Shown piece after piece: positions 44,877-44,891 of a stretch of DNA of 64,000 nucleotides. The notes under the pieces are model-generated. The model was not told the DNA's origin, made no database searches, and worked only from the letters and a program-made list of their open reading frames with translations. Every line of letters starts with the position of its first letter. Position 1 is the stretch's first letter. This DNA is from Sminthopsis crassicaudata. Taxonomy: Eukaryota. The translations under genes were made by a program, and so were the position numbers. The stretch spans positions 103,571,919 through 103,635,918 of the forward strand of contig NC_133618.1 of assembly GCF_048593235.1 (NCBI RefSeq), given 5' to 3'.

Positions 44877-44891
44877 GCAGGGAATTGTCAA
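44877..44891 (+). CDS. EML6: Candidate 15-nt alternative microexon of EML6 (R)QGIV(K)
   Basis: ttttaacttgctttcctttggag|GCAGGGAATTGTCAA|gtaagt; phase 2-2, frame-preserving; resembles the QGVVR part of the EML5 linker insert as recalled. Confidence 0.75.

Follow-up and report, generated by a model that had tools for sequence, protein, structure and literature searches.

The window, i.e. the whole 64,000-nt stretch of Sminthopsis crassicaudata DNA analysed here, carried exons of EML6 and, deep in a long intron of that gene, a 15-nt alternative microexon. Exons were searched singly. With the upstream exon, phmmer gave a long EML6 protein (P0008), most of the other matches being ORF fragments of a single exon that ran on into the intron, and the translation of this exon matched proteins named EML6 in both phmmer and word searches. 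The peptide of the downstream exon agreed with EML6 and differed from EML5. Pfam recognized the end of the second EML propeller (Beta-prop_EML_2) just upstream of the linker intron (29424–29714), and a HELP motif beyond that intron. By these exon matches, the Pfam HELP and EML beta-propeller domains and the downstream peptide, the host gene is EML6. The features around the 15-nt exon were as follows:

29810..29936, + strand: upstream constitutive EML6 exon (…YDSDVAREK…KEISMEE), ending in AG, which belongs to an Arg codon; donor gtatgg (29937)
29937..47607, + strand: linker intron (skipping form), 17,671 nt, between the second and third TAPE units
44837..44876, + strand: conserved region from branch point to 3' splice site, with the branch-point-like motifs TTAAT and TTTTAAC, UGC, a short pyrimidine run and the GAG acceptor
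44877..44891, + strand: 15-nt alternative microexon, adding QGIVK after the junction Arg
44892..44898, + strand: GTAAGTA donor, strong, identical in damselfish, milkfish and quail
47608..47686, + strand: downstream constitutive exon PPVSRAAPQPEKLQKNNITKKKKLVE, starting with G, donor gtgagg; its peptide is identical in EML6 models
48236..48365, + strand: exon with the HELP motif at the start of the next TAPE unit (Pfam PF03451 HELP, E 1.8e-14)

The insert fell at about residues 1336–1343 of a 1966-aa isoform, in a short basic linker ~33 residues ahead of the HELP motif. By the Pfam matches and the residue position, this linker joins the second and third TAPE units, not the first and second. An earlier note on this DNA had called the junction that of exons 11 and 12, the numbers being relative to the window.

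Ahead of the 15-nt exon stood ...ttttaac-ttgc-tttcctttggag, and gtaagt came after it at 44892–44897. The branch-point-like motif TTTTAAC occupied 44854–44860 and the UGC 44862–44864, the latter preceding a short pyrimidine run, and the predicted branch point nearest to the AG lay only 17 nt from it. A zone of 41 nt (44834–44874) was free of AG, and the GAG acceptor, with a G at -3 (a rare base there), was the first AG after this zone. Placed between the AG of the upstream exon and the G of the downstream exon, the 15 nt gave R-QGIVK-P in frame. A CAG at 44878–44880 lay 4 nt downstream of the GAG, and its use would yield an 11-nt frameshifting exon. When the splice sites were scored with a rough matrix, the GAG acceptor had 2.1 bits and the nearby CAG 6.1, ~4 bits apart. 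All that had been read before from these letters, namely the flanks, the donor, the UGC, the AG-free zone, the frame and the 11-nt CAG form, was found as described.

Two further observations concern the window as such. Runs of N were present at 35562–35712, 44363–44562 and 61397–61567, one of them ending 314 nt upstream of the microexon. An element of ~200 nt was repeated on both strands (1511–1777, 5518–5800, 8144–8419, 47160–47374 and others), with translations like …LGLSDLPRVTQLGSVKCLR…, and we take it to resemble a tRNA-derived marsupial SINE, which would point to a marsupial host.

The insert in EML6 gene models and in EML5

P0008 with its linker region was used as a word-search query and matched 376 proteins, of which 120 cluster representatives were listed, almost all named EML6 by their source. 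The residues between …EE and PPVSR were extracted from these 120 EML6 matches and read as follows:

R only (skipped): ~96 of the 120 matches listed, most representatives
R-QGIVK: 6 of the 120 matches listed, Ascaphus truei X1 and X3, Osmerus, Salvelinus, Monopterus and Clupea
R-QGIVKGSR: 7 of the 120 matches listed, Conger, Stegastes, Micropterus, Chanos, Nematolebias, the shark Chiloscyllium and the ray Mobula
longer insert with QGIVKGSR at its end: 1 of the 120 matches listed, a gecko model
R-GSR: 3 of the 120 matches listed, Polypterus, Cyprinodon and Fundulus

QGIVK stood at the junction in 13 representatives among the matches listed, in the longer gecko insert and in four cluster members. 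The residues GSR were encoded by a second small exon of the same intron:

46248..46256, + strand: partner 9-nt microexon GGGATCCAG, adding GSR, with UGCUGC before and gtaata after

The left flank of this 9-nt exon was …ttggctttgtttgctgcttacaag, and gene models read RGSR or RQGIVKGSR. All four combinations of the 15-nt and 9-nt microexons were present among the models, which are predictions and most representatives of which show the skipped form. Every insert-bearing model with QGIVK used the 15-nt form, not the 11-nt one. Members of the 2094-member amniote cluster from Papio, Cercocebus, Chlorocebus, Lacerta agilis and Corvus kubaryi had RQGIVKGSR, and the surmise that the exon might already be annotated in eutherians was borne out by the isoforms of Papio anubis, Cercocebus atys and Chlorocebus sabaeus. 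From sharks to monkeys QGIVK was invariant across annotated EML6 isoforms, with the lemur P0097 departing from it. The 15-nt exon is, by its sequence, the orthologue of an EML6 linker microexon already present in many public models; it is real, not new. It had been described as 'hidden', a term that fails for the gene family, in whose models it already stands, and applies at most to the Sminthopsis crassicaudata genome.

P0097 (Eulemur rufifrons EML6 isoform X1) is the representative of the 2094-member cluster and had RYGVVRGSR in place of RQGIVKGSR. RYG is also the product of reading through into the intron, so the sequence of P0097 may stem from an artefact of the gene model or from a change in its lineage.

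QGIVK had further been proposed to match the QGVVR part of an insert, ERQGVVRGSRPPV, in the paralogue EML5. EML5 was reached via fragment-length candidates with an EML5-type exon (…KPHLQLKEPSVDE). A 397-aa EML5-like, Logan-derived fragment without a name (P0238) read …VDE-RQGVVRGSR-PPVSR, and a partial Varanus EML5 (P0236) had the skipped form, R-PPVSR, in support of the proposed match. The EML5 insert QGVVRGSR shared with EML6 its position (…DE-R, insert, PPVSR…), its 5+3 length and 6 of 8 residues, the differences being I to V and K to R, with one peptide fragment on the EML5 side. On this fragment EML5 appears to hold the same microexon pair (QGVVR and GSR); if so, the pair is older than the EML5/EML6 split.

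Conservation of the two microexons and of the intron around them

Three EML6 loci, from damselfish (L001), milkfish (L002) and quail (L003), were compared with the window. At 44836–44904 the window was compared with the fishes and quail by eye, and blastn was used with the window sequence beside that place. The orthologous exons were as follows:

15-nt exon, in the same intron of EML6: L001 68470–68484, L002 33067–33081, L003 50001–50015
9-nt exon: L001 70392–70400, L002 34360–34368, L003 51257–51265

Quail was identical to the window over 62 nt (44837–44898; 40 nt upstream, the exon and gtaagta; by eye). From the window the damselfish and milkfish 15-nt exons differed in a single base, the third of the Gly codon and synonymous, and by eye each fish agreed with it at 33 of the 44 nt directly ahead of the exon. 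The fish flanks were …ttttaac(c)ttgc.ttcc..tggag before the exon and gtaagta after it, with the GAG, the UGC, the branch-point-like motif and the donor all kept. These signals were alike in the fishes and are therefore conserved across bony vertebrates, and coding constraint was indicated because the sole exon difference from the fishes was synonymous. An unbiased scan of the 10,988-nt quail intron for in-frame AG…GT recovered both microexons (RQGIVK at 50001–50015 and RGSR at 51257–51265); the annotated quail EML6 protein is without the insert. When the quail intron was compared with those of the fishes, the two microexon blocks gave significant similarity (E 1e-13 to 1e-16; 4e-7) and nothing else in the intron did. 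The claim of a real in-frame microexon was upheld by QGIVK at the junction in annotated EML6 isoforms and by the presence of the exon with its splice signals in the DNA of damselfish, milkfish and quail.

Candidate exons of the linker intron (3–30 nt, frame-preserving and stop-free) were scored with the same rough matrix. The 15-nt exon was the only such candidate reaching its own scores at both sites, and looser thresholds gave three further candidates, including the 9-nt exon at 46248–46256. When the intron was simulated 200 times with a first-order Markov model, 15.5% of the runs held at least one equally good candidate, so the splice pattern alone was not significant. This result and the rarity of a GAG acceptor would suit a pseudo-exon, with an AG…GTAAGT pair that arose by chance in a long, AT-rich intron and is not used in splicing. 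However, all 5 residues of the peptide recurred in the insert that many annotated EML6 isoforms carry at this junction, and the exon and its flanks were retained in the DNA of the fishes and quail, where the remainder of the intron could not be aligned. A chance origin was refuted by this orthology, and we give it practically no weight; the decisive sequence evidence for the 15-nt exon is orthology, not the splice pattern.

Conservation extended to a region beside the two exons:

45216..46294, + strand: conserved intronic island between and around the microexons, with a GCAUG cluster and the block 46008–46079

The island aligned with the quail intron as a single blastn hit (66% over 1122 nt, E 2e-108), the other ~15 kb giving none, and identity to quail peaked at 46055–46154 and 46205–46254. 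Nine GCATG motifs were present in the intron, and three of them clustered at 46108, 46121 and 46171 (TGCATG at 46170; region 46101–46176). This cluster is of RBFOX type and lay between the microexons, 77–140 nt upstream of the 9-nt exon; two of its three motifs were within quail-identical runs, and similar clusters were found upstream of the 9-nt exon in both fishes. The block 46008–46079 was shared with quail and with milkfish, in the latter at 77% over 75 nt (E 2e-10). It held a UGC and a conserved AG…10 nt…GT (…tttgcccag-TGACGCCAGG-gtagga), splicing of which would shift the frame, and the block might serve as a decoy or poison exon, or else in regulation. A 21-nt candidate at 46025–46045 was ruled out as an exon, its acceptor not being conserved in milkfish.

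Since the 15-nt exon is inside a wider conserved intronic island, the sequence might have been conserved while its use as an exon was lost in this lineage, or might serve as an intronic regulatory element only. This we consider very improbable, as the acceptor AG, the donor, the frame and the five codons were intact and identical to quail, the synonymous fish difference pointed to coding constraint, and the partner 9-nt exon was intact as well. The tandem acceptors raise another reading, in which splicing is mostly at the CAG and the 11-nt frameshifting exon acts as an expression switch (premature stop and mRNA decay) and not as a protein insert. The CAG was the better acceptor by ~4 bits in the rough matrix, and both AGs, 4 nt apart, were conserved in fish and quail. 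However, the insert-bearing gene models all used the 15-nt form, conservation of the CAG is explained by coding (CAG being the Gln codon), the invariant peptide and the synonymous-only change favoured translation of the 15-nt form, and the GAG was the first AG past the 41-nt AG-free zone; there is thus little chance that the 11-nt form is the main product.

Taken on this sequence evidence, 44877–44891 is very probably a genuine conserved alternative coding microexon of EML6, paired with the 9-nt exon at 46248–46256. A true 15-nt exon lying 15 kb into an intron can accordingly be recovered by reading raw sequence, and an annotation of the Sminthopsis crassicaudata genome should give EML6 isoforms that are longer by 15, 9 and 24 nt here.

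Predicted function, regulation and comparison with known microexons

Inclusion of the 15-nt exon would add QGIVK, that of the 9-nt exon GSR and that of both QGIVKGSR, the frame being kept in all four combinations. The insert would bring one or two basic residues, a serine and the invariant hydrophobic I-V pair into the linker, and because of these residues its effect is probably to adjust how the linker interacts with a partner protein or with microtubules, and not the fold. QGIVK, with or without GSR, may alter how the basic linker before the HELP motif binds or is phosphorylated.

UGC between the branch point and the AG has been reported in 74–79% of SRRM3/4-dependent microexons, with a strong 5' and a weak 3' splice site (bioRxiv 10.1101/2024.09.17.613571), in agreement with the general statement of the earlier note that UGC marks such exons. 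On SRRM4 expression in cancer cell lines, the PSI of a 9-nt EML5 exon (HsaEX6072470), which may be the GSR exon, rose from 0 to 51–69, and that of a 21-nt EML6 exon (HsaEX1013082) from 0 to 36 (PMC7935315 S6 Data). The EML6 15-nt and 9-nt exons were absent from the SRRM4-response tables examined, PMC7935315 S6 Data among them, and in the papers searched no main text linked EML6 or EML5 with microexons, the one paper that names both EML6 and SRRM4 being unrelated.

From the exon architecture and the paralogue response, we lean towards the 15-nt exon being SRRM3/4-dependent and neural-enriched. SRRM3/4 acting near the UGC would aid early recognition of the 3' splice site in neurons and related cells, and the strong 5' splice site would make up for the missing exon definition at an exon of 15 nt. 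With the UGC as enhancer of a weak 3' splice site, inclusion would be confined to neuronal and related cells, and the GCAUG (RBFOX-type) motifs between the microexons may modulate inclusion as a second input.

A real microexon could also be regulated in a way that is not SRRM3/4- or neural-specific, being RBFOX-driven, included in muscle or another tissue, or included broadly. The conserved GCAUG cluster between the two exons, the missing entry for the 15-nt exon in the SRRM4-response tables examined and the atypical position of its UGC would fit such regulation. We nevertheless think it rather unlikely, as a UGC between the branch-point-like motif and the AG was conserved from the fishes to Sminthopsis crassicaudata, UGCUGC stood ahead of the partner 9-nt exon, and the 9-nt EML5 exon and the 21-nt EML6 exon responded to SRRM4 (PMC7935315 S6 Data).

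Beyond SRRM3/4-dependent, neural-enriched inclusion, a more far-reaching and, in our judgement, decidedly unlikely proposal would join the GAG/CAG tandem and the ~1.4-kb island, with its GCAUG cluster and the block 46008–46079, into one unit setting none, +5, +3 or +8 residues. The 11-nt form or the 10-nt block would then be a frameshifting off-switch of EML6, and the switch would be older than the EML5/EML6 duplication. For minigene work, the conserved GAG beside the in-exon CAG and the RBFOX-type motifs between the exons offer handles. The locus also offers a clear case of two tandem microexons (15 and 9 nt), deeply conserved, in a microtubule-associated protein that has hardly been studied.

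Compared with public EML6 isoforms (Papio anubis X1, Lacerta agilis X1, Corvus kubaryi X2, Ascaphus truei X1/X3, Chanos chanos X2 and Chiloscyllium plagiosum X1), the junction and QGIVK (with or without GSR) were the same, with no difference of substance, and the EML6 orthologues compared as DNA also agreed in the sequence of the exon, in its GAG acceptor and in its GTAAGTA donor. In the literature on neural microexons, synonymous-only exon change goes with a near-invariant upstream intron, and the 15-nt exon had the same pattern. With the SRRM3/4-dependent microexon programme (3–27 nt) it shares length, frame, a strong 5' and a weak 3' splice site, UGC between the branch-point-like motif and the AG, extreme conservation of exon and upstream intron, and a linker insert outside folded domains. 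It differs from that programme in its GAG acceptor and in having the UGC before a short pyrimidine run, i.e. upstream of the pyrimidines, whereas the usual order is branch point, pyrimidines, UGC and AG.
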